Shown here: piece by piece, positions 5,666-56,381 of the stretch
Numbering within the stretch: position 1 is the stretch's first letter
Layout of the letters: every line of letters begins with the position of its first letter
Virus record (IMG/VR): IMGVR_UViG_3300029258_003221
Location: 124,001-188,000 of that record
Direction: 5' to 3' (one strand)
DNA: 64,000 nt
Position numbers and translations under genes: made by a program
Notes under the pieces: generated by a model
Told to the model about the DNA's origin: nothing
The model's database searches: none
What the model saw: the letters and a program-made list of their open reading frames with translations, nothing else

Positions 5666-5863
5666 TTAGGCAGCCCATGCGTGCTGTCGTGTATCGTTGA
5701 GAGCGGCAGAGAGGGCAGCGTTTGTTGCTTTGGTGGCTGCTGCGTCGTAGCCTCTCAGAAAAGTTTCGCCTTCGTGGCTTTCGGGATCAAGACCATGACT
5801 CATTGGCCATCGATCTTCACCGTGTTTGTAGGCATCCCATCCCATTTGGTAATACTTGTTCAT
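5666..5863 (-). CDS. hypothetical protein (C-terminal WAA)
   Basis: 65 aa, GGGGAG RBS. Confidence 0.7.
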   Translation of the reverse strand: MNKYYQMGWDAYKHGEDRWPMSHGLDPESHEGETFLRGYDAAATKATNAALSAALNDTRQHAWAA

Positions 5864-5909
5864 CGTTCTCCCCTGTTGGTGTTGTGTTGACAGTGTTTGA
5901 GTGGGTGTC

Positions 5910-6113
5910 TCATCCGAGTGGCACTGCTGGCATAATCCGCTTCATCACTGACCTGATCTCGTCGGTGACTTCACCGCCGTTAGCGACATGTCCCGCCAGA
6001 TCAATACATGCAGTGATTGCACTGGTTCTGAGGTATTTGTCATTGCGTGGTGAGTCACCTTTGAAGGCATCAACGTCTTCGGCAGTTCTCTTGTTGTAGT
6101 TCATGTCGAACAT
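5910..6113 (-). CDS. hypothetical protein
   Basis: 67 aa, flanked by motifs. Confidence 0.65.
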   Translation of the reverse strand: MFDMNYNKRTAEDVDAFKGDSPRNDKYLRTSAITACIDLAGHVANGGEVTDEIRSVMKRIMPAVPLG

Positions 6114-6237
6114 TGTTTTCCTGTGGGTGTCTTAGAGCAACTGAAAACGAACTGACGGGTTTGCCTTGACCACATTCAGTCCGTTATCAGTTGTTCTACA
6201 TGGCTCAGTCTCAGGAGGAGGAATTGAAGTGTTGCCG

Positions 6238-6435
6238 TTAGGCAGCACGTCGTCGGCTTGATCCCTTCTTAGTTCGTTTCAGGGTCAGCGGTTGTTTCTG
6301 ACGGTCAATCAGACGAACACCGTCAGTGGCGTTGTTTAACATCGCATAGTCGCACCTCGCTTCCTGTTCTTGATCAGAATTATATTCGGTTACACCCATT
6401 CCGGGAGCGATGACAACAAATCGGTTCTTGAACAT
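6238..6435 (-). CDS. hypothetical protein (C-terminal RRRAA)
   Basis: start moved to ATG with AGGAG RBS. Confidence 0.7.
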   Translation of the reverse strand: MFKNRFVVIAPGMGVTEYNSDQEQEARCDYAMLNNATDGVRLIDRQKQPLTLKRTKKGSSRRRAA

Positions 6436-6479
6436 TTGGCTCTCCTTTGTTGTTGATGATGTTCTGTTACTGGGTGTCG

Positions 6480-6656
6480 TCAATCACCAACATACCGAGC
6501 GAGTTCCATCTCACGTCTGAGTTTTTTCATCTCTTCCGGTTTGGCGTTGTCCATTCTTTTGCGAACGTCCTGTTGCCAGCATCGGTGATAGTGGTAGTGA
6601 TCTCCGGCGTTTCCTTCGTTAGGTCGGCCACAGAATTTGCACTTACCTTTTTTCAT
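6480..6656 (-). CDS. small Cys/His (putative Zn-binding) protein
   Basis: CKFC...HRC motif, GGAG RBS. Confidence 0.65.
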   Translation of the reverse strand: MKKGKCKFCGRPNEGNAGDHYHYHRCWQQDVRKRMDNAKPEEMKKLRREMELARYVGD

Positions 6657-6699
6657 GGTTTCGCTCCGTTGTGGTGTTGTTGATGTATGTTTATTAGGT

Positions 6700-6735
6700 G
6701 TCCACCGGGACAGGGAGCCAACTGTCCCGGTGGAC
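6700..6735 (-). terminator. strong intergenic hairpin
   Basis: 14-bp perfect stem GTCCACCGGGACAG/CTGTCCCGGTGGAC whose 3' arm runs into GACACCT; no U-tract. Confidence 0.45.
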
Positions 6736-6752
6736 TCACCACCAACCCACAC

Positions 6753-7043
6753 TCACATATTAAACCATTTGCCGCTGATGGCATCAGCGTATCGTTCCCC
6801 AGTGTAGTGAGGATCATCGCTGTTTATTTTGCTCCAACCGTAGGTTGTCACGTGCATTCGGTACTGCCCTGACGTGGCTTTGTCCCCTCGTTTGCGTCGT
6901 CGTCGTTCAACAGCGTATCGTTGAATCATCTTGTCAAAGCTGTCGAAGGCGAGTTCAATTTCCCGTGGCTTATCAGGGTCACGTTCCATGTGATTGAATT
7001 GTACCCGCATTGAAAAGCTGACAGTTTGCGGGTGTGTAGTCAT
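6753..7043 (-). CDS. hypothetical protein
   Basis: 96 aa, RBS, preceded by the intergenic module. Confidence 0.7.
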   Translation of the reverse strand: MTTHPQTVSFSMRVQFNHMERDPDKPREIELAFDSFDKMIQRYAVERRRRKRGDKATSGQYRMHVTTYGWSKINSDDPHYTGERYADAISGKWFNM

Positions 7044-7084
7044 TTGTCGTCCTTCCGTTGTTGTTGATGTTGTGTTAGTGGGTG

Positions 7085-7237
7085 TCAGCTTTTGACTTCC
7101 ACCTGTTCTCTTGGGTTGACGAAGAACGTGTTTCCTTTGCTGTCCATAGCTTCATTGTCGCCAGTTTTGATACATTCTCCATTCCAGCAGTGAAACGGGC
7201 GATTCTTGGGCAGTGTGTGAAACTCAACCATTTTCAT
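7085..7237 (-). CDS. hypothetical protein
   Basis: start moved; TGA stop overlaps motif. Confidence 0.6.
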   Translation of the reverse strand: MKMVEFHTLPKNRPFHCWNGECIKTGDNEAMDSKGNTFFVNPREQVEVKS

Positions 7238-7281
7238 GTCGTCCCTCTTAAGGAGTGTTGGTGATGTTGTGTTAGTGGGTG

Positions 7282-7485
7282 TCAGACAAAGCAGGACAGT
7301 GTTTGACTTGGGTGATGAGGTTGAACGGCTTCCCAGCAATTCAGAGCAGGCACCCAGATGCCGCCTGTTGTGTAGTTGGGATTGTCAACGATGAGGAACT
7401 CGGTTGTTCCGTTGTTCTGTCGATCATCGATGACCCAGCCGTGTTTCTCTTCACCGTTGATTGTGTAGAAGGTTTCGTTGTTCAT
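7282..7485 (-). CDS. hypothetical protein
   Basis: 67 aa; TGA stop overlaps motif. Confidence 0.65.
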   Translation of the reverse strand: MNNETFYTINGEEKHGWVIDDRQNNGTTEFLIVDNPNYTTGGIWVPALNCWEAVQPHHPSQTLSCFV

Positions 7486-7504
7486 GGCTCTTTACAGGGT
7501 GTCG

Positions 7505-7630
7505 TCAAGCAGCCCGACGTTCGTATTTCTTTTCCCGTCGTTTAGCTCTTTCCCTGTCCTTTTTTCTTCCTTGTTCACGTTTCTGGCGACGGCGATCTCT
7601 GTCGTGTCCCGTCTCTTCTCTGATGTACAT
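7505..7630 (-). CDS. 41-aa highly basic peptide ending RRAA (not in ORF track)
   Basis: manual translation MYIREETGHDRDRRRQKREQGRKKDRERAKRREKKYERRAA*; ATG directly follows GACACCC. Confidence 0.6.
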   Translation of the reverse strand: MYIREETGHDRDRRRQKREQGRKKDRERAKRREKKYERRAA

Positions 7631-7692
7631 GGGTGTCTCTTTGAGGGTTTGAAGAATGCCACCGGGATTTGTTCCCGGTGGCGTTAGGTTGT

Positions 7693-8094
7693 TTACGCTG
7701 CTCGCTGTGCGGCGAGTTCGGCGTCGGCCTGTTCCATTCCCAGCAGTACCAGAGCCGGGATATTAGTTTGTCCACCTTCCATGTGTTTGAAGGACTCGCA
7801 GAATTCATCCCATTCCCTTGCCGACCGGATAGGCACATCATTGCCGTATCGTGGTTTTTCGTACCATTCGGCGATATTAGGCCCACGTCTCTTGTGGCTG
7901 AACTTCACCGTATCCCCTCGTTTGGTGACACAAACAAAGGTGTTGTCAGTGAAAGTGATTCGATAGCCACCGGGAACCATTGTTTCCTTGAGTTCCCCTT
8001 TCTTGTTGGTTGTCATGATCGGAATCCAGTTTCGCTTTGCTTCTTTGATTCCGATTGGCTTACACGGTTTCAGTGTTTTGATGGCCTGCACCAT
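7693..8094 (-). CDS. hypothetical protein (C-terminal QRAA)
   Basis: 133 aa, GGGAG RBS. Confidence 0.75.
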   Translation of the reverse strand: MVQAIKTLKPCKPIGIKEAKRNWIPIMTTNKKGELKETMVPGGYRITFTDNTFVCVTKRGDTVKFSHKRRGPNIAEWYEKPRYGNDVPIRSAREWDEFCESFKHMEGGQTNIPALVLLGMEQADAELAAQRAA

Positions 8095-8144
8095 GATCGT
8101 CTCCCTGTTAGGAAAGTGTTGTTGATGTTTTGTTATTGGGTGTC

Positions 8145-8303
8145 TTAGGGGACTTCAACCCAATCGGTATAACCTTTGACTCGCCATGCTTCGTTGTAGA
8201 TATCGTCACCATCGTAATTGACAGTCACAACATCGAACTGTTCGAGGATCAGAGTTCGGAAGTAGAGTTTTCCGTTCTCTCGTTTGAATTCCACCGATTC
8301 CAT
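8145..8303 (-). CDS. hypothetical protein
   Basis: start moved to ATG with GGGAG RBS; TAA-GACACCC. Confidence 0.65.
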   Translation of the reverse strand: MESVEFKRENGKLYFRTLILEQFDVVTVNYDGDDIYNEAWRVKGYTDWVEVP

Positions 8304-8341
8304 TGTTTCGTCTCCCGTTGTTGGTAGTCTGTCAGTGGGTG

Positions 8342-8611
8342 TCAGACTCCACAAACTTTGTAGACGAGTTTGGTCCAGAACTTGTAGTCTTTTTCGACGA
8401 GCTGGTCGAAAACTTCCTGACTGGCTTGCATGGCGATGGATTCAAACTGTCCACCAACAACCATTTGTTCTTGCCATTTGCTGTCGGGGAAGGACTCTCG
8501 TTTTTCTTCGGCGATCTTTTTACGACGTTCGTATTCTTTGTCGCCGAGGTTGTTTCTGTGGCGTTGTTCGACTTCATTTTCTGGTGTGATTTCCCATTGA
8601 ACAGCGGACAT
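8342..8611 (-). CDS. hypothetical protein
   Basis: start moved to ATG with GGAGG RBS. Confidence 0.65.
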   Translation of the reverse strand: MSAVQWEITPENEVEQRHRNNLGDKEYERRKKIAEEKRESFPDSKWQEQMVVGGQFESIAMQASQEVFDQLVEKDYKFWTKLVYKVCGV

Positions 8612-8656
8612 GTTCGTCCTCCAGTTGAGTGTTAGTTGTTGATGGTTTGTTAGTGG

Positions 8657-8686
8657 GTGTCCCCCGGCGTTGTTGCCGGGGGACAC
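8657..8686 (-). terminator. hairpin downstream of ParB-like gene
   Basis: 12-bp stem GTGTCCCCCGGC/GCCGGGGGACAC whose 3' arm overlaps GACACCC. Confidence 0.45.
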
Positions 8687-8696
8687 GGTTCGTTGG

Positions 8697-9542
8697 TTAT
8701 GCAGCCCGTCGTCGGTTTCCGATGTTGTAGACCTGTTCCATTGCTGCAAAGCAGGCACTTCGGTTTGGTCGGTCGGTATCGTCTCGACAGGAGTTCTGTG
8801 CAATTCGGAATATCTCCGCAGCGGATCGTCGTCCCAGTCGATCTTTGATATCTTCAATTGAGGCGTCACCATAGGCTCTGATGAAATCAACCAGTCCTCT
8901 CAAGAACCCATTGCCACCAGCTTGGTATTCAAGCCCTCGCTTGCTCCTCCACAAACTGAGAATTTCAAACAGTTCGTTGAGAATGTCATGTGAATACGCT
9001 TCGGTAAGGGGTGTCAGAGACCGGATATCTGCCGTTCTGGTGTTGAATCCGGGAGTGTTGGGGATTGAAAATCCCCATTGTGTCAAGCCGTCTTCGATAT
9101 CGACAGCAAAAGGATATTCAGCTTCCAATGCTGCTGAAAATGCGTCCCAGACATTCATTCGACGACTGTTCTGAGTCAGTTCGTGGAAGATTGCAGCACA
9201 AGTTGCTTTGTTGACTCCGAAGTGGATTTCGCAAGTGATGTACTTTTGATGTTCCATCATTTCCATCATCCACAATGTGTGTCGTCCATCAATGGGTAGC
9301 AACTTTCCTTTGACATAGACTAAGATTGGATTTCTCACAGCCCGTCGATTGAAACTGTCTTTGAGTTCCAAGCTGTGCGACTTCACGTGGTCACGGAAGT
9401 TGTAGTTGTTGTTCTTTCCCAACTCGATTTTTTCTCTGTCTACCAGACAGAGATAAGCCAAGCTGGTAAGCTTGCAAAAACATTTTTCAATTCCTGCTTT
9501 GTGGTGTGTTTTTGCCAGTTTCTTAGGCTTAAAATTGTCCAC
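8697..9542 (-). CDS. ParB/Srx-like N-terminal domain protein (DUF6551-like)
   Basis: 281 aa; NPILV...PIDGRHTL motif followed by a helical domain; ends RRRAA. Confidence 0.65.
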   Translation of the reverse strand: MDNFKPKKLAKTHHKAGIEKCFCKLTSLAYLCLVDREKIELGKNNNYNFRDHVKSHSLELKDSFNRRAVRNPILVYVKGKLLPIDGRHTLWMMEMMEHQKYITCEIHFGVNKATCAAIFHELTQNSRRMNVWDAFSAALEAEYPFAVDIEDGLTQWGFSIPNTPGFNTRTADIRSLTPLTEAYSHDILNELFEILSLWRSKRGLEYQAGGNGFLRGLVDFIRAYGDASIEDIKDRLGRRSAAEIFRIAQNSCRDDTDRPNRSACFAAMEQVYNIGNRRRAA

Positions 9543-9610
9543 GTTTACTCTCCCCGAGTGTTAGAAAATGTTTTGAGCGTTGTTTGCTCACTGCCCTATC
9601 GCCGGGTGTC

Positions 9611-9649
9611 AAAAACATCACCCCCGACAACCCGGTATTGTCGGGGGTG
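9611..9649 (-). terminator. intrinsic terminator
   Basis: 12-bp stem CACCCCCGACAA/TTGTCGGGGGTG, then ATGTTTTT, then GACACCC. Confidence 0.6.
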
Positions 9650-9680
9650 TAAAAATATTTTCTTGTAAAAAGCGACTCAT

Positions 9681-9899
9681 TCAACAGAACCCTGCTGTAT
9701 AGAATCGTAGACGCTTGTCTTTTGGGCCGATTGGCAGTATCATTTCGACTACCACATCAGCCAGTTTGTTCGGCGGCGGTTTACCGCTGTACCGGGCAAA
9801 GTAGAATATCAGAAATGCAAACATCATTGCTCCAGTTTCAGGAAGAACCCAGACCTCCCTGTTTAGCACAGGGCACCCCGATTTCGTGCTCCTAGTCAC
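9681..9899 (-). CDS. hypothetical protein
   Basis: 72 aa ORF filling a gap; weak RBS. Confidence 0.35.
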   Translation of the reverse strand: MTRSTKSGCPVLNREVWVLPETGAMMFAFLIFYFARYSGKPPPNKLADVVVEMILPIGPKDKRLRFYTAGFC

Positions 9900-9957
9900 T
9901 CACAACGAACTGGACTAGCTGGGCGGGCGTTGTTTCGATGAGTTGTTAGTGGGTGTC

Positions 9958-10365
9958 TTACTCAACCCGGTCGTGGACTGAGATTGGTGCAGTGTAGTTA
10001 ATGTCATCATGCACCATTGCATTAGTGGTGCTGATGTAGCTGCCACCAGCCATGACGTGTTTGCCATTGCGAATTGCTCCGACCCACTTGGCGGCATAGG
10101 GGTTATCGAGACTTGGCGGTCCTGATCGTGGCAGGCAGAGGATCAGACTGTCATTGGTCAGGAAGTGACAACCTTTGACAATCTCTCTCACCTGACCATA
10201 TCTGGGCAGATTTCCATCGACATAGACACGCCAGACATTGATTGAGTCTCTTCGGCGGGTGATGCCATCATTGGTGCAGTCGTGGTGATTGATCAGCACC
10301 GTCATTCGGTGAACATGGGCACTGCATCGTTGTGCAATTGTTGGATTGGTCGTGGCGATTGTCAT
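9958..10365 (-). CDS. hypothetical protein
   Basis: 135 aa, GGGGAGAG RBS; TAA-GACACCC. Confidence 0.75.
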   Translation of the reverse strand: MTIATTNPTIAQRCSAHVHRMTVLINHHDCTNDGITRRRDSINVWRVYVDGNLPRYGQVREIVKGCHFLTNDSLILCLPRSGPPSLDNPYAAKWVGAIRNGKHVMAGGSYISTTNAMVHDDINYTAPISVHDRVE

Positions 10366-10420
10366 TGTCTCTCCCCAGAGAAATGTTTTGTTGTTGATGG
10401 TTGGTTACTGGGTGTCAGAT

Positions 10421-10560
10421 TGGAGATGGAGGGACTCGAACCCTCGTCCAAACTTATCACGTTATCCCAAACACGAGCGAAACATGGGCCTTTTCTCGTT
10501 GTCGCCTACCCTATAGCGGCGACTGTTCAGCGTGATAGCCTGTCAATACCATTCATCCCC
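10421..10560 (-). ncRNA. miniature tmRNA-like RNA (tRNA-like domain only, 140 nt)
   Basis: 5' GGGGAUG-AAUGGUAUUGAC and 3' GGAC-GAGGG-UUCGAGU-CCCUC-CAUCUCC-A; acceptor stem with G3.U70 and A73; no D-stem; helix 2 present; no room for an MLD or pseudoknots. Confidence 0.8.
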
Positions 10561-10713: not shown

Positions 10714-11178
10714 TTACGCTGTTACTGGGTGTCGGACAACACACTCAACACCGGCTTTGTCGCAGATGCCTTTGAGTAGTTCGAGCCAGTTTGGTTGTTT
10801 GTTGAAGATATCCCCGTCGATTCCGAAGATTACTTCTTTCCCATCGTTGTACTCTTCCGAACTTGATCGGATTGCGTAATTACGATCCACAATCCACATG
10901 TGTGGTGTTCGGCTTGACTTCGTTGCCAGTTTACCGGGTGTCCTCAGATAGCACATATGATCGTCACCGAACAAATGTGCATCACTAGAAACCTTGACAC
11001 GAGCCAGATTGAGCCCAATGCCCATTAGTCGTTGACGAATCAGATGCAGCAGGTGAATTTCAGCTCCCCAACCATGAACATGGCGGGTGTATCCACTTGC
11101 CGTAGCTTTTTGGTCGGTGTCCTCTTTCTGGACAACGAGTGTTCCTGAGTCTTTGAACAGATTGAACTTGATTTTCAT
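10714..11178 (-). CDS. hypothetical protein
   Basis: start moved to ATG with GGGGAGA RBS. Confidence 0.75.
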   Translation of the reverse strand: MKIKFNLFKDSGTLVVQKEDTDQKATASGYTRHVHGWGAEIHLLHLIRQRLMGIGLNLARVKVSSDAHLFGDDHMCYLRTPGKLATKSSRTPHMWIVDRNYAIRSSSEEYNDGKEVIFGIDGDIFNKQPNWLELLKGICDKAGVECVVRHPVTA

Positions 11179-14499: not shown

Positions 14500-15525
14500 T
14501 TATGCCACCATTTCCAGAGCGAGCTGGAATGCTCGTTCCTTAAAGGCAGCCCCGTCATTCTCGATAACCGACTTGTATCGGTTCTCGTTCGTTGCTCGTT
14601 TGTCACCACGAACAGTCCGACGTTTGCCATGGTCAATAGCCTCAGTCACACTGTTAAACAGTGCCCACCAAGTGCCCTTGACTCCCTTCATCTGCTGTCC
14701 GGGCTGTTTGAACATATAGCGAAGTTCGCCAACCTTTCGGTCGTGAGCATTCTTTGCTCGGTTGTATCCTCGTTCCGTTGAGTACGTTTCCTCAACAGGT
14801 GTCGGATACAGTTCTTCCATGTAATCCGCTGCACGTTCTTTGTCGTATCCCACCAACAGTTTCTGTGCGTTTTCACGAAACAGGGTGAACTGTCGATCAA
14901 ACTGACTGATGGCGTCTTTCGCCGCATCCAGCTTGAGTTTCATGTCACCAGAGTGCCGAATGGCAATCTGATTCGTGTTGCCTTCCAGTGCTGCACGAAC
15001 CGTGTTAGCACAAACGGCACGAACGCTTGTAGGTGTCAGAATTGTTGATCCGCCACCATGCTGAAGTTTCGCCATGACATAGCGAAAACTCACATCGCCG
15101 GGAACAACTTCGTCATAGGACGGCATACGAGCGAGCAGAACAACGCTCTTTCCGCCATTCAGGACGAAGACTGATTCGTATCGAATCACGCCGTCCATGT
15201 GCAGGGAATCGAGAAACTCGAATCCTTCACGGTTCTGGAGTGGTTCGTACTTGTCACCCACTACGTGGAGGAGTTTGCCGGTGTCTGTTCTGACCAGACG
15301 ATACCAACCGTCATCGGCGTTGCCGTCAGTGTCACAGACAGGACGTTTTTCCACCTTGAAGAAAATTGAAGGAAGAATTTCCTCAATTTCCTGTGAACAG
15401 GGTGCCAGACCTTCACCCGGTCGCCAGACTTCACCAAGGCCATGCCATGCGGGTGAATTCGCATAGAGTGCTTCGTGAGCCAATCGACCATCGGACAGTC
15501 TTACTGCTTCAATCTCATGTGACAT
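14500..15525 (-). CDS. DUF932 / TIGR03299-like phage-plasmid protein
   Basis: PAWHGLG, YEPLQN.E.F.F, TPTSVRAVCANT, IRHSG and GTWWALFNSVTEAIDH motifs typical of the family. Confidence 0.85.
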   Translation of the reverse strand: MSHEIEAVRLSDGRLAHEALYANSPAWHGLGEVWRPGEGLAPCSQEIEEILPSIFFKVEKRPVCDTDGNADDGWYRLVRTDTGKLLHVVGDKYEPLQNREGFEFLDSLHMDGVIRYESVFVLNGGKSVVLLARMPSYDEVVPGDVSFRYVMAKLQHGGGSTILTPTSVRAVCANTVRAALEGNTNQIAIRHSGDMKLKLDAAKDAISQFDRQFTLFRENAQKLLVGYDKERAADYMEELYPTPVEETYSTERGYNRAKNAHDRKVGELRYMFKQPGQQMKGVKGTWWALFNSVTEAIDHGKRRTVRGDKRATNENRYKSVIENDGAAFKERAFQLALEMVA

Positions 15526-15610
15526 AGTCACTCTCCCAAAAAGAAAACTTTTGTTTTGGCGATTGTTCGCCACTGTCCCATCATAGGGTGTCCACTTTTA
15601 CTCCCAGCGA

Positions 15611-15946
15611 TCAGGAAGTAAGAGTCCAAGGCCGATGGGTAGCCTCGATTCCTTGATTGTCACGAATTTCACGATGATCCTCATCCAGCATATTCGTGAT
15701 AGTATTGCAGTCTCCTCGTGTCAGGTGACCATCCAGCGTCCCTTGAACAATGAATGTCGCTGTGACTGCCGGATGTCGGCGGGACAGATTCTGAATCACA
15801 GCAACATAGTTTTTGTTGTGCCAATCAGCGATCAAATTACTCACTGATCGGTCGATGACTTCGTTGTACTCAGGTGTCACACTTACTCTCCTGATATTTG
15901 GCCCACAGCAGCGGGCATTCGGTTGCCAGCCATTCCAACACGTCAC
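15611..15946 (-). CDS. hypothetical protein (true start probably nearer 15877)
   Basis: ORF in operon. Confidence 0.55.
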   Translation of the reverse strand: MTCWNGWQPNARCCGPNIRRVSVTPEYNEVIDRSVSNLIADWHNKNYVAVIQNLSRRHPAVTATFIVQGTLDGHLTRGDCNTITNMLDEDHREIRDNQGIEATHRPWTLTS

Positions 15947-16658
15947 TCAGTGTTCCCGTCTGAGAACTAGCGTGAGTTGCAACAGCGTTGTATTCGTCTT
16001 GCCATTGTTCGGGTGTCGCACCCCATCCAATGCAAAGACCATCTTCCCGCATTCCGTACTGTCGATCCTCAGCATCCTGACGAATGTTCTCAATGTCTGA
16101 TTCCACAGCGGCAATGAACTCCAGACTGTCAACAGTTACACCGTGTCGAGCAGCCACTTCTTTGGCAATGCCTTCCAGCTTCTGTCGTTTCTCAGCCTGT
16201 TGCCTTGCTTCGTGGGTTTCCGGGGTGTCCACTCGTTGAACGATGGCAACACCACAGTTGTACTCAAACAGAGTTTGAAACAGCTCCAAACCATTTTCAT
16301 TTGGAATGCGGGTATCGATCAGAAGATACTTCAGGCAATCCTCATCAAGATTGAAGACAAATTCCTTTGCCATGGCGGCAACGTCACAAGTCTTGTAATA
16401 CCGACGATCACCGTACAAATCAGGATCGTCGTTAATCATGGTGACCACGATAGTGGGAATGCCCACACGCTCAATAATCGTGGAAACATATTTTTCCATT
16501 CGCTGCTTGCGAAAGGCACAAAGTGCGGCCTGTCCATAACCTTCGCCGATGAATTCAAGCATGTCGTTCATTTTGTCTCTCCCGAAACAACTTTTGTATT
16601 TGTCACTGTCTGCTTGATGGGTGTCAGCTAACTCCCTGACCGTTGGGAGTGTTGTCAC
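15870..16658 (-). CDS. hypothetical protein
   Basis: 262 aa, GTG start just downstream of a promoter. Confidence 0.75.
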   Translation of the reverse strand: MTTLPTVRELADTHQADSDKYKSCFGRDKMNDMLEFIGEGYGQAALCAFRKQRMEKYVSTIIERVGIPTIVVTMINDDPDLYGDRRYYKTCDVAAMAKEFVFNLDEDCLKYLLIDTRIPNENGLELFQTLFEYNCGVAIVQRVDTPETHEARQQAEKRQKLEGIAKEVAARHGVTVDSLEFIAAVESDIENIRQDAEDRQYGMREDGLCIGWGATPEQWQDEYNAVATHASSQTGTLSDVLEWLATECPLLWAKYQESKCDT

Positions 16659-17891: not shown

Positions 17892-18089
17892 TTACCGGGT
17901 GTCGTGTTCCTTACGAACCTTCCGGTAGCATTCAATAAATTCAGCGTCAAATGAAGAACGCCATCCACAGCGGCAACGAAACTGATTCCCATCCCACTCT
18001 GTTCGTGGATGACCTTTACGACAACCATCACTCCCACAGTAAGGGGAGTATCCCGGTCGTGTCAGAAGATTCTTACGAACAATGCTCAT
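17892..18089 (-). CDS. small Cys-rich protein
   Basis: PYCG..C..PR....QF.C.CGW. Confidence 0.7.
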   Translation of the reverse strand: MSIVRKNLLTRPGYSPYCGSDGCRKGHPRTEWDGNQFRCRCGWRSSFDAEFIECYRKVRKEHDTR

Positions 18090-20324: not shown

Positions 20325-20717
20325 TCAAACAGCAGCCATCTTCATGTAAAGAACAACCTGCTGAGCACTCATTTTGTAAACCTTGCCGTTCGACACGCTC
20401 TTCACCAGAATCGGATACTTTTTGGCACGAGTATTCGCACCAATGATCTCGAACGTGTCATTGCCGTTGCTGATCTCTTTTCCAAGATCATCAGGGGACA
20501 GACCCCACAGAACAGCATTTCGCTTGAAAGTTTCGCCGTCCTTCGTGTTCACTGAACCATCAGAGTTTTCAGTTCCAACTTCCAGCTTGAACGTGGCTGT
20601 TGTGTGATTGAATGAAGCACGACCAACATCAATTTTCACACCATCAAAGTCCAGATGTTCATCCAGAGCTGACTGGATGGCGTCACGAAGTTCACGTACT
20701 TTTGCCCTGTCAAACAT
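20325..20717 (-). CDS. phage-type hypothetical protein
   Basis: start moved; GGGAG RBS; TGA overlaps motif variant. Confidence 0.75.
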   Translation of the reverse strand: MFDRAKVRELRDAIQSALDEHLDFDGVKIDVGRASFNHTTATFKLEVGTENSDGSVNTKDGETFKRNAVLWGLSPDDLGKEISNGNDTFEIIGANTRAKKYPILVKSVSNGKVYKMSAQQVVLYMKMAAV

Positions 20718-21816: not shown

Positions 21817-22806
21817 TCAAGCTGCCTTTCGCTTACTAGGCTTCTTCTGTTCCAGTCGGCGGAAAGCATTGTCCATCTGTTTGTCAGACTTGTTACCTGC
21901 CTGCCACTCAAGCAGGACATTCATCACATCATGAAAGTCCTCGAACTTTTCGTCTTCCAGACGTGAGTTCAGGTAAGTCTTCAGTTCCCGAATCGAGCGG
22001 GTAATGCTCTTAGCAGGCTTCTGGTCCGAAGGTGCCGGAGCTTCACCGAAAATCGCATCAGCTTCCGAATCATCATCGTCCACGTCGGCGAGATGATGAT
22101 CTCGCAACTGTGATCGAACATCCGAACCACTCACCTTGCCGTTGTCCTTCTGACACTTGGCGATGATTGCTGCTCGTTCCTCGGTGTCCACATCCAGCAG
22201 ATCAACAGCAACCTGCGTCGGAAGCTGACCAAGGTGAACCATTCGCTGCTCCTCATCACTCAGAGACAGCAGCTTGCGGAGCTTGCCAACCTGAGTCACA
22301 GAACAACCATAAAACTTGGCGATGTCCGTGTCACTGTCACCGTGCTCACGCATCCGGTTCTGGTTGTGAGCATCGTCGATGTCCGAACAAGCATTTCGCT
22401 CGTTGTTCTCGGCGATATTGCGGTACAAAGCTTCCTTATCGTTGCAATCGGCAACGATCACCTTGAGCGTGAACTCGGGATCATGGTACTGAACCCCTTC
22501 GTGCTCAAATCCACTGCGGATCAGACGGGCAGCAGCAGTTCGGGTGAATCCCAGAACCAACTGAAGTTTTTTGTCCTGAACTCGGCGAGCCATGACCGGC
22601 TGCAACTGAGTCTTTTCCAACATGGAAATTGCACGACTGATGATATCAGCCTCTGTCGGTGCAAATTTCCGACCTCGAAGATCGTCCTTGACGATGATTT
22701 CGTTGGGATCAACGAAAAAGTAATCCCGACGCTTCACGTCACCTGCGTTCAATGCCGTAGCCATTCTGTAGTCCTCTGCAAAACTAGGAAAAAAGTTGTC
22801 ATTCAC
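21817..22806 (-). CDS. ParB/RepB/Spo0J-like protein
   Basis: QLQPVMARR...LVLGFTRTAA, NIAENNER, HTH-like DIAKFYGCSVTQV; ends KRKAA. Confidence 0.8.
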   Translation of the reverse strand: MNDNFFPSFAEDYRMATALNAGDVKRRDYFFVDPNEIIVKDDLRGRKFAPTEADIISRAISMLEKTQLQPVMARRVQDKKLQLVLGFTRTAAARLIRSGFEHEGVQYHDPEFTLKVIVADCNDKEALYRNIAENNERNACSDIDDAHNQNRMREHGDSDTDIAKFYGCSVTQVGKLRKLLSLSDEEQRMVHLGQLPTQVAVDLLDVDTEERAAIIAKCQKDNGKVSGSDVRSQLRDHHLADVDDDDSEADAIFGEAPAPSDQKPAKSITRSIRELKTYLNSRLEDEKFEDFHDVMNVLLEWQAGNKSDKQMDNAFRRLEQKKPSKRKAA

Positions 22807-23154: not shown

Positions 23155-23610
23155 TTACTGGGTGTCCACTTTGGGAACCAATGGCAATCTGTCGCCTTCA
23201 CCAAACATATATTCCTCTGGATCATCCTTGAAACGAACTACGCACTCGTAATATGACTTCGAGTGGTCCTCAAAGACAGATTCAACTGTCTTCTCATGAC
23301 AAATCGTGTCAGTTTCATATATCACGGTGTCACCTTTATTCAAATCACAAGGCTCAACCGTAAATGTCTCTGGAATATCCGTTTCCCGACTAACAGCTCC
23401 CATGATGGCACCCATCACAGTCAATGGTTCTTCTGCCCATTCAGAAGCTTCCCACATAACCATCTCAAAACCGTTTGAGTCCACCAACCGAACATATTCA
23501 CATTCAGCCGGATAAGCAGGACAAACCAGTCGGAGACCATTAGGAAGCAAAACACTGCATTCCTTCTCTCGATCAATCGGTCCATACTGCGGGTTAAATG
23601 GCCCCATCAA
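23155..23610 (-). CDS. hypothetical protein
   Basis: 151 aa, AGGAG RBS. Confidence 0.7.
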   Translation of the reverse strand: MMGPFNPQYGPIDREKECSVLLPNGLRLVCPAYPAECEYVRLVDSNGFEMVMWEASEWAEEPLTVMGAIMGAVSRETDIPETFTVEPCDLNKGDTVIYETDTICHEKTVESVFEDHSKSYYECVVRFKDDPEEYMFGEGDRLPLVPKVDTQ

Positions 23611-31999: not shown

Positions 32000-32218
32000 T
32001 TTGTTCTCCCGGTGAGTGATTGGATGTTTTGTTACCGGGTGTCAGCTTTTGCGAGTGACCGCTGGCAAGCTGCGAGAGCGTTTTCAAGTTGTTCGGCAGT
32101 TTTGGGAGCGAGCAAAACTGTTTCTCGTAATTTTGGGAGATCAGGATGATAACCCAATTCAGTTTCTTGGAATCTCGCCCCGCAATTTGGTTTGATTCTG
32201 ATTTCGTTGAGTAATTGT

Positions 32219-35682: not shown

Positions 35683-35916
35683 TCAGGTGTCCTCTTCTTT
35701 GAAGATTGGCATAGTTTTCCAGTCGTCTACGCCATAAGGATGTTCTGAATCGTAAAACCGTTCATTGATACGAGCGACACAGTGTCCTGAAAATCGTCCG
35801 CATTTTTCACAGTCATTCGTTTCACAGTGCTTCTGCTTCTGCGATTTCATCAGGTGTCGGAATTTTGACGAAACTTCCGTAATGACTTCCATCACCAGCA
35901 AAGGTGATATGAGCAT
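35683..35916 (-). CDS. hypothetical Cys-containing protein (start uncertain)
   Basis: ORF filling gap. Confidence 0.5.
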   Translation of the reverse strand: MLISPLLVMEVITEVSSKFRHLMKSQKQKHCETNDCEKCGRFSGHCVARINERFYDSEHPYGVDDWKTMPIFKEEDT

Positions 35917-55386: not shown

Positions 55387-55794
55387 TCATGAAACGATCT
55401 CCTGAACTCGTCTACCTGAAACAAGGTAGTCTTTCTTGTAGTAACGGACATACTGTCGTCGGTTATGACGAACACGCTGGTCTGCAATTTTGATGAGTGA
55501 TTGCAGTTCGTTGATTCTATCTGAATCAATTTCAAACTCAATATGACAACCACCCATCATCAAACCAGAAGTTGCCTCAACTCGTATGCCATGTTCTTTA
55601 AGAACTTCATCCCGAAACATGGCTTCCAGCATGTTGTCAACTGATTCAGTAGTGGGTGTTCTTGTTTTGGCAATACGATCACCTTGGAATGATGAACCAA
55701 GCTCCGTATACACCACATCCACGTCGGATTCAGGCCAAATCACATGCAGCTTGAAACCGATGTTGCCGAGTGTTGTTTGAACTGGTTTAGTCAT
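55387..55794 (-). CDS. hypothetical protein
   Basis: start moved, ATGA coupling. Confidence 0.65.
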   Translation of the reverse strand: MTKPVQTTLGNIGFKLHVIWPESDVDVVYTELGSSFQGDRIAKTRTPTTESVDNMLEAMFRDEVLKEHGIRVEATSGLMMGGCHIEFEIDSDRINELQSLIKIADQRVRHNRRQYVRYYKKDYLVSGRRVQEIVS

Positions 55795-56381
55795 GCTGCG
55801 AAATCCAATGGGAAGTAGTATCGATGACAAGGATTGCCCCAGTCAAACCTCTGACGAGGGAGTTTGTATTTAGCTTTCAGCTTCCTGAACAACACTTTGT
55901 TGGGCGCTGTCCTCATGTTAGACAGATAAAACTTCATGCCTTTGTTGCGATAGTATTCCGCAGCATAAAGCAACATCTGTTCCGCCAGTCCCTGACGACG
56001 AAATGGCTCATCGACACTGATGAATTCTTCAAAAGGTTTGTCCACGAAAAAATTCTGGAATGAACGAAAGTCATCTTGATGATGTTTGTTCATGTAAGCT
56101 AATGCTTCTTCACGGGACAGTTCCTTCCTGTGGTTAATCCATCCCCAGTATTCCGGCTTTCCACTTTCAAACTTTTCGACAGCACCACACCAGCCATTGA
56201 CCTTATCCAAAAAGCTGACAATTCCAAGAGGATAAAACTTGGGAATGTTCTCGTGAGGAATGTATGAGCACTTCAGATAGGCAATTTCTTCACCTTCATG
56301 GTGAACACTAACCCGATCCACAACCCAACCTCGATTGGGACGTTCTGTATCAAGTTTTATTGAGAAGTCATACATCAACAT
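55791..56381 (-). CDS. GNAT-family acetyltransferase
   Basis: ISVDEPFRRQGLAEQML (motif A R/Q-x-x-G-x-A); ends DFAA. Confidence 0.7.
   Translation of the reverse strand: MLMYDFSIKLDTERPNRGWVVDRVSVHHEGEEIAYLKCSYIPHENIPKFYPLGIVSFLDKVNGWCGAVEKFESGKPEYWGWINHRKELSREEALAYMNKHHQDDFRSFQNFFVDKPFEEFISVDEPFRRQGLAEQMLLYAAEYYRNKGMKFYLSNMRTAPNKVLFRKLKAKYKLPRQRFDWGNPCHRYYFPLDFAA

Follow-up and report, generated by a model that had tools for sequence, protein, structure and literature searches.

Results

A cluster of genes with Ala-Ala tails

The DNA analysed here is a window of 64,000 nucleotides from the 234,631-bp contig of a huge marine or sediment phage, and all positions refer to this window unless stated otherwise. 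Between positions 5666 and 9542 there are 12 consecutive genes by our own gene calls, five of which, all on the minus strand, encode proteins that end in two alanines. The first (5666-5863) is a 65-aa ORFan ending in HAWAA, which has a good Shine-Dalgarno sequence upstream and a strong hairpin downstream; the 60 nucleotides after the gene fold at -31 kcal/mol. The second (6238-6435) is a 65-aa ORFan ending in SSRRRAA, with no match to a Pfam or PHROG family. The first in-frame start codon of this gene is a TTG at 6483, while our choice of start is the ATG at 6435. The third (7505-7630) is a very basic 41-aa protein ending in YERRAA, whose ATG lies inside a copy of the GACACCC motif described below. 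This short ORF was doubtful on its own, however a 42-aa orthologue in a diverged syntenic relative, L030 (49% identity, E 2e-11), also ends in RRKAA, so it is probably a real gene. The fourth (7693-8094) is a 133-aa ORFan ending in AAQRAA that has no homologue among 5.8 billion proteins other than itself, and it is followed by a hairpin of -22 kcal/mol.

The fifth gene (8697-9542) encodes a 281-aa protein with a predicted ParB-CTPase fold, ending in GNRRRAA. Its match to Pfam DUF6551 scores 22.8 bits, below the gathering cut-off of 26.8, yet 48 of 78 relatives match DUF6551 at E-values up to 0.001 (best 1.5e-30). It is therefore a divergent branch of this family. An AF2 model (pLDDT 94) shows a ParB/Srx-like N-terminal fold followed by a helical domain, with the last helix at residues 261-273 and an unstructured tail in which the pLDDT drops below 50. 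The top Foldseek hits are Noc, ParB and KorB (probability ~1, E about 1e-3, TM 0.3-0.5), a similarity that is weak but consistent.

Two further Ala-Ala proteins in the window lie outside the cluster, again on the minus strand. A 329-aa ParB-like protein (HTH_ParB; 21817-22806) ends in SKRKAA and is followed by a terminator hairpin; in the AF2 model residues 322-329 are unstructured and the pLDDT is below 50 for residues 326-329. A 194-aa GNAT acetyltransferase (55791-56375; Pfam Acetyltransf_1, 26.4 bits) ends in LDFAA.

Copies of a junction motif, (T)GACACCCAnTAAC, are found at nearly every gene boundary of the cluster on the minus strand (5897-10416), where the 13-nt matches start at 5897, 6466, 6690, 7074, 7271, 7491, 7625, 8132, 8331, 8649, 9945 and 10404. 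There are 48 matches in the window against 5 expected, 47 of them on the minus strand. The GACACCC motif has some resemblance to the T3, SP6 and Syn5 promoters and could be a promoter of the T7/T3/SP6 single-subunit RNA polymerase type. A search for the corresponding polymerase family (PF00940), run without a positive control, gave no match on the fragment.

A 141-nt tmRNA-like gene lies 0.9 kb from the cluster (10420-10560, minus strand). It scores 53.7 bits against Rfam RF00023 (gathering score 47) and has a complete tRNA-like domain with a G3:U70 pair and an acceptor stem of GGGGAUG/CAUCUCC. There are only 78 internal bases. ARAGORN predicts the tag DNEKRPMFRSCLG, and a second candidate frame after AGUC (GCC GCU AUA GGG UAG) would give AAIG; neither of these ends in AA.

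Enrichment of Ala-Ala termini

The original prediction had set statistical enrichment as a test of the pattern, and this we were able to carry out. Across the whole contig a hexamer-model caller gave 371 genes, 10 of which encode proteins ending in -AA, where about 1-2 are expected. The internal AA dipeptide rate is 0.44% (binomial P 8e-6), and from position-specific frequencies P is 1.7e-4. In contrast, ORFs that are not genes give 5 of 1459. The occurrence of five such proteins in 12 consecutive genes has a permutation p of 4.7e-4. The [RK]AA-COOH ending is seen six times against 0.18 expected (P 4e-8), and 40 proteins end in -A against 22 expected (P 3e-4).

All 10 of the -AA proteins and 33 of the 40 -A proteins lie in a block of 208 genes, almost all on the minus strand, that starts at about 4.8 kb in the window. 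The other 163 genes have 0 and 7, respectively. The bias is strongest in long, safe genes, as 5 of the 26 proteins of 250 aa or more in this block end in -AA. The endings in a single alanine that had also been listed (LATA, EMVA, QYVA, HEVA, KAIA, KAVA, DKVA and LAVA) are present as well. However, one of these is not conserved. The 343-aa DUF932 protein at 14500-15531 (minus strand), a synteny anchor with L030, ends in LEMVA, while its orthologue in L030 ends in LEMAC.

Conservation of the tails

The tails are selected at the protein level. In the DUF6551-like family, 66 of 150 diverged representatives (at most 50% identical to each other) end in -AA, with the consensus R-[KRL]-A-A, and the linker after the last helix varies in length. 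A 37%-identical orthologue keeps NRRRAA. In the family of the second ParB-like protein, 32 of 74 homologues end in -AA, including all 15 of the closest, and here positions -3 and -4 range from basic to acidic.

The syntenic relative L030 provides an independent replicate, in which the pattern is repeated on mostly unrelated small proteins. Eight of its 45 genes, which were called by others, encode proteins ending in -AA (P 8e-12), and six of these are proteins with no homologue in this phage. As a control, only 1 of 252 genes ends in -AA in other phage loci, not counting the proteins that were themselves the search queries. Against a link to ClpX, only the ParB-fold protein is AA-tailed in two further relatives, L009 and L010, and distant DUF6551 members in gut Heliusvirales phages lack the tail.

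A phage-encoded ClpX

Outside the window, the same contig encodes a full-length ClpX (contig positions 230664-231926). Against the curated NCBIfam equivalog models it scores 558.9 bits for NF003745 (cut-off 359) and 546.4 bits for TIGR00382 (cut-off 370.75), and matches E. coli ClpX chains with an E-value of 5e-135. In the alignment to E. coli ClpX the C4 zinc finger of the N-domain, the GYVG pore-1 loop, T199 and V202 of the pore-2 loop, the RKH loop and the ClpP-docking IGF loop are all conserved, although the Pfam zf-C4_ClpX score of 26.4 is just under the cut-off of 27. The six residues Y153, V154, T199, V202, R228 and H230, which contact Ala-Ala-COO- in E. coli ClpX (PMC7652416), are all present. 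The protein itself ends in KTKAA. A Peptidase_M50 gene, from a family that includes the site-2 proteases, lies directly upstream of clpX. Cleavage by the site-2 protease RseP exposes a -VAA end which ClpXP then reads.

The contig also encodes a second large AAA+ ATPase, a 566-aa proteasome-ATPase-like protein (TIGR03689-like, 277 bits, below the cut-off) that ends in FGAA. Searches for ClpP (PF00574) and SmpB found neither on this fragment, which is only 44% complete, and a host ClpP is expected.

Discussion

The unusual run of Ala-Ala termini that was originally predicted for this locus is real and is not due to chance. Our best reading is that these are genome-encoded C-terminal recognition tags of the ssrA type (ClpX C-motif 1), each a short, disordered tail whose last two alanines and free carboxylate would be read in the axial pore of ClpX. 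In this phage lineage the tag sits on a varied set of proteins, namely two ParB-CTPase-fold DNA-binding proteins, several small accessory ORFans, a GNAT, an AAA+ ATPase and the phage's own ClpX. In this view the reader is the phage-encoded ClpX, the host ClpX, or both. As the phage ClpX keeps the IGF loop it could dock on ClpP, most likely that of the host. Tagged proteins would then be unfolded and degraded, or ParB-type clamps would be stripped from DNA, and either way each protein would have a limited lifetime set by ClpX capacity. Our analyses establish the enrichment, the clustering, the conservation at the amino-acid level, the disorder of the two modelled tails and the presence of a complete ClpX with the recognition residues. 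That ClpX binds these tails, and that binding leads to degradation rather than to remodelling or competition, is inferred from the motif alone. We hold this reading with moderate confidence.

The interpretation first offered for the cluster is partly supported. The tails are a non-random signal at the protein level, and the link to ClpX has gained strong circumstantial support from the clpX gene, which lies beyond the window, and from the nearby tmRNA-like gene. However, the proposal that these are the earliest proteins is unsupported; the cluster lies at the 3′ end of a ~100-kb minus-strand block and nothing shows when it is expressed. The description of the tmRNA as lacking an mRNA-like domain is also not supported, as its 78 internal bases hold possible short reading frames and the gene is not clearly devoid of a coding part. 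The basic, MuA-type reading of the tails is not needed. In the second ParB-like family the residues before AA are often acidic, so AA-COOH itself is the conserved element.

The closest known systems are the ssrA tag and other C-motif-1 degrons of E. coli, such as the cleaved RseA and LexA fragments, which end in -VAA. In these systems the C-terminal tail is unstructured and its terminal Ala-Ala-COO- is the main determinant (PMC7652416, PMC12723719); other cellular proteins ending in Ala-Ala are also ClpXP substrates (PMC7652416). Here the invariant element is likewise AA at the very end, after a variable disordered linker, but it is encoded in the gene rather than added by tmRNA or exposed by cleavage, and there is no SspB-binding part. 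Furthermore, the antepenultimate residue is mostly R, K or E instead of the Leu of ssrA. It is W, R, R, R, R, K, F, V, G and K in the ten proteins of this phage, K, R or L in the DUF6551 family and often E in the HTH_ParB family. In E. coli, mutating this position raises KM only modestly.

There is a precedent in the integration-dependent immunity of mycobacteriophages, where Rep and Int carry C-terminal ssrA-like tags that set protein lifetime through ClpXP (PMC9635641). There, two regulators of a temperate switch are tagged and the tag is removed by integration. Here ten or more varied proteins of a huge phage carry the tail, there is no attP logic and the phage brings its own ClpX. The MuA transposase tail (RRKKAI, C-motif 2) is also a basic C-terminal tail on a DNA-bound phage protein, and a few DUF6551 relatives end in SKAI or KKVA. 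The conserved element here is AA and not a basic patch, yet the idea that ClpX strips a stable nucleoprotein complex, as it does in remodelling the transpososome, fits ParB-type clamps.

Huge phages that encode ClpX are known at the annotation level (PMC7824862), e.g. Bacillus phage G, which has ClpP, ClpX and a tmRNA (PMC12484599), Atu_ph07 and Lak. The ClpX described here is 45-54% identical to these. No client signal has been reported for them in the literature that we could search, whereas here a set of AA-tailed proteins accompanies the ClpX and no ClpP is on the fragment. Against our reading, the ClpX of phages G, Atu_ph07, Phosso and Lak is not AA-tailed. That of LR756511, the closest ClpX phage in GenBank, is, but a 41-kb sample of this phage shows no general enrichment (1 of 63, its ClpX). 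The 281-aa protein shares its fold and family neighbourhood with phage DUF6551 fusions that bind CTP or ATP in vitro (bioRxiv 10.1101/2025.10.10.680097); that work does not mention a C-terminal tail or ClpX.

A more far-reaching possibility, which we consider unlikely, is that a lineage of huge marine or sediment phages runs its own protein-lifetime system. A phage ClpX, self-limited by its own tail and paired with a site-2 protease, would read a genome-encoded Ala-Ala tag placed on a changing set of accessory proteins and on two families of ParB-type NTP-dependent DNA clamps. A miniature phage tmRNA whose tag does not end in AA could meanwhile take over ribosome rescue, so that rescued host and phage chains stop competing for ClpXP. 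The AA tail of phage ParB-fold proteins, seen in dozens of diverged relatives in each family, would then mark a general, undescribed ClpX-driven unloading or turnover step for phage ParB-like clamps.

Of the alternatives, the one that survives best, although it remains doubtful, is that AA-COOH is a docking peptide for a reader other than ClpX. This could be the 566-aa AAA+ protein, or a partner specific to ParB-fold proteins such as a ParA-like ATPase or another DNA-segregation or silencing factor, with the extra AA-tailed ORFans of this lineage as clients of the same reader. In favour of this, two different ParB-fold families carry the conserved tail, only the ParB-fold protein has it in L009 and L010, the AAA+ protein is itself AA-tailed, and the -3 residue differs from that of ssrA. 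The tail could therefore be primarily a ParB-family feature with a different partner. However, no reader of this kind is known, while ClpX is a documented reader of AA-COO- and is encoded here with the recognition residues intact. The tails also sit on proteins that are not ParB-like (the GNAT, ClpX and ORFans) in two related phages.

It is less likely that the small proteins are decoys, made in bulk to saturate host ClpXP by proteolytic queueing and so protect other phage proteins or disturb host regulation, rather than to time the small proteins themselves. Competition between LAA-tagged proteins for limited ClpXP is documented in E. coli (PMC12013620, 10.1101/136812), and several of the tagged proteins are tiny ORFans, each with its own junction motif and ribosome-binding site. 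Yet a phage that adds its own ClpX increases capacity rather than blocking it, and large enzymes and DNA-binding proteins with family-conserved tails are unlikely to be mere decoys.

It is very unlikely that the GCN GCN codons before the stop are a by-product of an overlapping DNA or RNA signal, such as the junction motif, a terminator stem or the stop-codon context. Such an effect does exist here for another tail, as 15 proteins end in -DT or -DTx because the motif GACACC(CNN)TRA is read in frame, and AA-tailed genes are more often followed by a strong hairpin (6 of 10 against 28 of 195, P 0.002). However, this explanation is largely refuted by codon variation, as all four Ala codons are used at the tails, both here and in L030. 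The hairpins and motifs start after the stop and do not include the Ala codons, and the tails are conserved across families from many unrelated genomes with different contexts. Finally, although the pattern was picked post hoc and several of the ORFs are very short and without homologues, chance, composition or a gene-calling artefact is refuted by P values of 1e-4 to 1e-8 under several nulls, by the low rate in spurious ORFs, by the stronger bias in long proteins and by the replication in L030.

Source contig and gene set

The window corresponds to bases 124001-188000 of a linear IMG/VR virus record of 234,631 bp that CheckV rates as 44% complete, so this is a phage of roughly half a megabase. 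The same sequence occurs in sediment and seawater metagenomes; only DNA runs, and no RNA run, were among those listed as holding it. Genes were called on the whole contig, under the standard code, with a self-trained in-frame hexamer model followed by weighted interval scheduling. This gave 371 genes with a score above 8, covering 88% of the sequence. The C-termini on which our analyses depend are determined by frame and stop codon only, and not by the choice of start.

Enrichment and clustering of Ala-Ala termini

The observation behind the original prediction, a cluster of proteins ending in -AA, is confirmed. The five ORFs are present with the stated ends, all in -AA. They are 5 of the 12 genes called between 5666 and 9542, all of which are on the minus strand. 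Over the whole contig 10 of 371 proteins end in -AA. The internal rate of the AA dipeptide is 0.44% (P 8e-6), and position-specific frequencies give P 1.7e-4, while unselected ORFs of 40 aa or more end in AA in 5 of 1459 cases. Given ten such proteins, finding five in any 12 consecutive genes has a permutation p of 4.7e-4. The ending [RK]AA-COOH occurs 6 times against 0.18 expected (P 4e-8), and proteins ending in any -A number 40 against 22 expected.

All ten AA-tailed proteins, and 33 of the 40 that end in -A, lie in a long and almost purely minus-strand block of 208 genes that begins at window ~4.8 kb. The other 163 genes have none and 7, respectively. The bias is strongest among long proteins, with 5 of the 26 proteins of 250 aa or more in the block ending in -AA, therefore short spurious ORFs do not create it. 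Paralogy among the five cluster proteins was considered and rejected, as apart from the basic tail their sequences show no evident similarity on inspection.

A junction motif and its effect on C-termini

The cluster has a striking junction motif, (T)GACACCCAnTAAC, which is followed by a CA-rich leader and a Shine-Dalgarno sequence and is found at nearly every gene boundary. The motif occurs at window 5097-61918 on the minus strand, is dense in 5.9-14.2 kb, and is found over contig 120-234 kb. Its core, GACACCC, occurs 118 times on the minus strand and never on the plus strand, and only from contig ~120 kb onward. In the 5.6-10.4 kb cluster it sits at or just after the stop codons and often supplies the stop codon itself. 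Relatives carry variants of the motif, TGACACCCGCTTG in L009, TGACACCCCCTTG in L006, GGACACCCAATAA in L029, GGACACCNNCTAR in L030 and TGACACTAYCRAAGGGGG in L010 (these are our labels for related loci). The motif resembles the promoters of the T3, SP6 and Syn5 single-subunit RNA polymerases, although no such polymerase was found on the fragment. It could be a promoter or an RNA processing site.

This motif does shape some C-termini. Fifteen proteins (window 15870-16658, 17892-18089, 23155-23607, 32032-32157, 35683-35850 and ten more) end in -DT or -DTx because GAC ACC (CNN) TRA is read in frame, and the same EDT/KDT ends are frequent in relatives L029 and L030. This is a C-terminal bias created by DNA. 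The AA tails are different. We considered whether they could be part of the junction motif or of terminator stems, and rejected this because the codons vary and both the motif and the hairpins begin after the stop. All four Ala codons are used in the tails (GCT 12, GCA 5, GCC 2 and GCG 1, against 39/34/19/8% genome-wide), and relatives use other codon pairs.

The motif may also mark sites of exchange. A strain of ~98% identity, found in other seawater runs, has about 220 extra bases between two copies of the motif region (window 8118-8145) and diverges completely upstream of 8663. The DUF6551-like gene is therefore not at that place in that strain, and gene cassettes seem to be exchanged at the motif copies. 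Among the differences that were compared, the strain variant shows no change in the tail codons, but the power of this comparison is too low for it to carry any weight.

Conservation of the tails in two ParB-like families

The 281-aa protein at 8697-9542 and its one 37% relative, which also ends in NRRRAA, were used to build a profile that was searched against 1.84 billion cluster representatives. This found 252 relatives. Of 150 of these, which are at most 50% identical to each other, 66 end in -AA and 81 in -A. The consensus of the tail is R(-4)-[K/R/L](-3)-A-A, and the linker after the last conserved helix varies in length. The protein is a divergent member of the DUF6551 / ParB-CTPase-fold group. 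A 2025 preprint reports that phage DUF6551 fusions bind CTP or ATP, and does not mention a tail.

Other searches with these sequences were less productive. Megablast of the region, and tblastn of the 281-aa protein and of a further query, P0025, found nothing among GenBank phages. A word-indexed protein search and pattern scans of viral and metagenome contigs with the 281-aa protein returned only identical copies plus the one 37% relative. The 133-aa protein of the cluster is an ORFan. Distant DUF6551 members in Heliusvirales gut phages end in acidic residues. Four viral contigs with distant ParB-like relatives have no AA tail, no ClpX and no AA enrichment, so the co-occurrence test that had been planned on them had no power.

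The second ParB-like protein (21817-22806, HTH_ParB) has 74 homologues, of which 32 end in -AA, including all 15 of the closest. The preceding residues range from RK to AE, KE, TD and ES, after a variable acidic linker, therefore the conserved element is AA-COOH itself. AF2 models of the two proteins are confident (pLDDT 94 and 89), and both leave the last eight residues unstructured, with pLDDT falling below 50.

Recurrence of the pattern in a syntenic relative

The contig around P0154 (L030, 21 kb) has a ParB-like protein that is 54% identical to this phage's. It is syntenic (a ParB-like protein, DUF932, then an array of small genes). Using the genes called in the source database, 8 of 45 end in -AA and 13 in -A (P 8e-12). 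Only two of these eight are orthologues of AA-tailed proteins here. One is the ParB-like protein. The other is a 42-aa basic protein that matches the 41-aa ORF at 7505-7630 on the minus strand (49% identity, E 2e-11), the tails being RRKAA and ERRAA. This match also rescues what had been a doubtful ORF. The 41-aa protein is extremely basic, with the conserved pattern M[YW]IRE..DRDRRR..RR(K)AA, and its start codon lies inside a motif copy, so it can only be translated from a transcript that starts further upstream. The other six are unrelated proteins, so the tail has been placed repeatedly on different accessory genes.

Other relatives show less of this pattern. L029 has 2 of 44, and in L009 and L010 only the ParB-fold protein carries the tail. 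Pooled control loci give 1 of 252, not counting the proteins that were themselves the search queries.

A phage-encoded ClpX

Three of the remaining AA-tailed proteins lie outside the window. One of them, at contig 230664-231926, is a complete ClpX. The NCBIfam equivalogs score 559 and 546 bits against cut-offs of 359 and 371, and the protein matches E. coli ClpX chains at E 5e-135. The alignment shows the C4 zinc finger, GYVG (Y153, V154), pore-2 T199 and V202, the RKH loop (R228, H230) and the IGF loop. Those six residues are the ones that cryo-EM and mutagenesis show contacting the Ala-Ala-COO- of the ssrA tag, and the same paper states that the terminal Ala-Ala is the main determinant and that other proteins ending in Ala-Ala are ClpXP substrates (PMC7652416).

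The phage ClpX itself ends in -KKTKAA. The closest GenBank phage ClpX (LR756511, 54% identity) ends in -ASEAA, but those of phage G, Phosso, Atu_ph07 and Lak do not end in AA. LR756511 has no DUF6551 relative and no AA enrichment around its ClpX, and a pattern scan of viral contigs with the phage ClpX found nothing. ClpX genes in jumbo phages are known from annotation (PMC7824862), and phage G has ClpP, ClpX and a tmRNA (PMC12484599). In the literature we searched there was no report of a client signal.

Directly upstream of clpX is a Peptidase_M50 gene (site-2 protease family, 250 aa), the pair occupying contig 230664-232761 (window coordinates 106664-108761, outside the window). Further upstream are a glycosyltransferase and an ion-channel protein. 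Also outside the window, at contig 214059-215759 and 218788-220440, are a 566-aa proteasome-ATPase-like AAA+ protein, which is another of the AA-tailed proteins (FGAA), and a 550-aa protein with WGR plus PARP catalytic domains. Radical-SAM/SPASM proteins lie at contig 226238-229151. No ClpP or SmpB was found on the fragment.

The tmRNA-like gene

At 10420-10560 on the minus strand there is a miniature tmRNA-like gene of 141 nt, for which the Rfam score of 53.7 bits uses only the tRNA-like domain. The acceptor stem has G3:U70, there is no encoded CCA, and 78 bases replace the ~308 of the model. The gene is flanked on both sides by the junction motif (10404-10416 and 10721-10733). ARAGORN proposes a 13-codon tag, DNEKRPMFRSCLG. 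A second frame, after an AGUC context like that of E. coli, would give AAIG. Neither of these candidate tags ends in AA. The original prediction described this RNA as lacking an MLD, which is therefore not established, and neither is a normal tag. In relative L006 a tRNA-Trp gene occupies the corresponding place upstream of the DUF6551-like gene.

Discussion

The tails are best read as genome-encoded ssrA-type ClpX tags. The enrichment, the clustering, the conservation of the tails and the presence of a complete ClpX are direct results of the sequence analysis, whereas binding of the tails by ClpX, and whatever follows from it, are inferred. The outcome of binding could be degradation with host ClpP, stripping of ParB-type clamps from DNA, or competition. 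The main rival is a different reader of AA-COOH. This could be tied to ParB-fold proteins, since in some relatives only they carry the tail, or it could be the second AAA+ ATPase. The interpretation offered in the original prediction is supported in part. Its proposal that these are the earliest proteins has no support. The cluster sits at the downstream end of the minus-strand block, and each gene has its own junction motif.

Hard-coded ssrA-like tags are already known for a few phage regulators, such as the Rep and Int proteins of mycobacteriophages, and the MuA C-motif 2 is a further case of a tag on a phage protein. What is new here is the scale, with ten or more varied proteins carrying the putative tag and the pattern repeated in a relative, the family-wide AA tail of two phage ParB-fold families, and the co-encoded ClpX that bears the same tail. 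If this reading is correct, the tags appear as a proteome-scale device together with a phage-encoded ClpX, which would give huge phages control over protein lifetime independent of host tagging. Separately, the conserved AA-COOH tail of two large families of phage ParB-CTPase-fold proteins of unknown role is a concrete and inexpensive handle on their biology. Are they ClpX clients, and is turnover or unloading part of their cycle? The tail also offers a first candidate client signal for the ClpX genes that have long been annotated in megaphages without a known substrate.

An unplanned observation, which we cannot explain, is that AA-tailed genes are followed by a strong hairpin within 60 nt far more often than other genes of the block (6 of 10 against 28 of 195, Fisher P 0.002). 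These hairpins lie downstream of 5666, 7693, 8697 and 21817 in the window, and of contig 212613 and 230664. The same is seen by eye in L030. This suggests that the AA-tailed genes may close transcription units.

AA ends can also come and go among orthologues. For example, a 130-aa protein at window 20325-20717 on the minus strand (Y4mA_C family in the relatives) ends in ...KMAAV here, in ...LKDAA in L030 and in ...LAIPT in L029.
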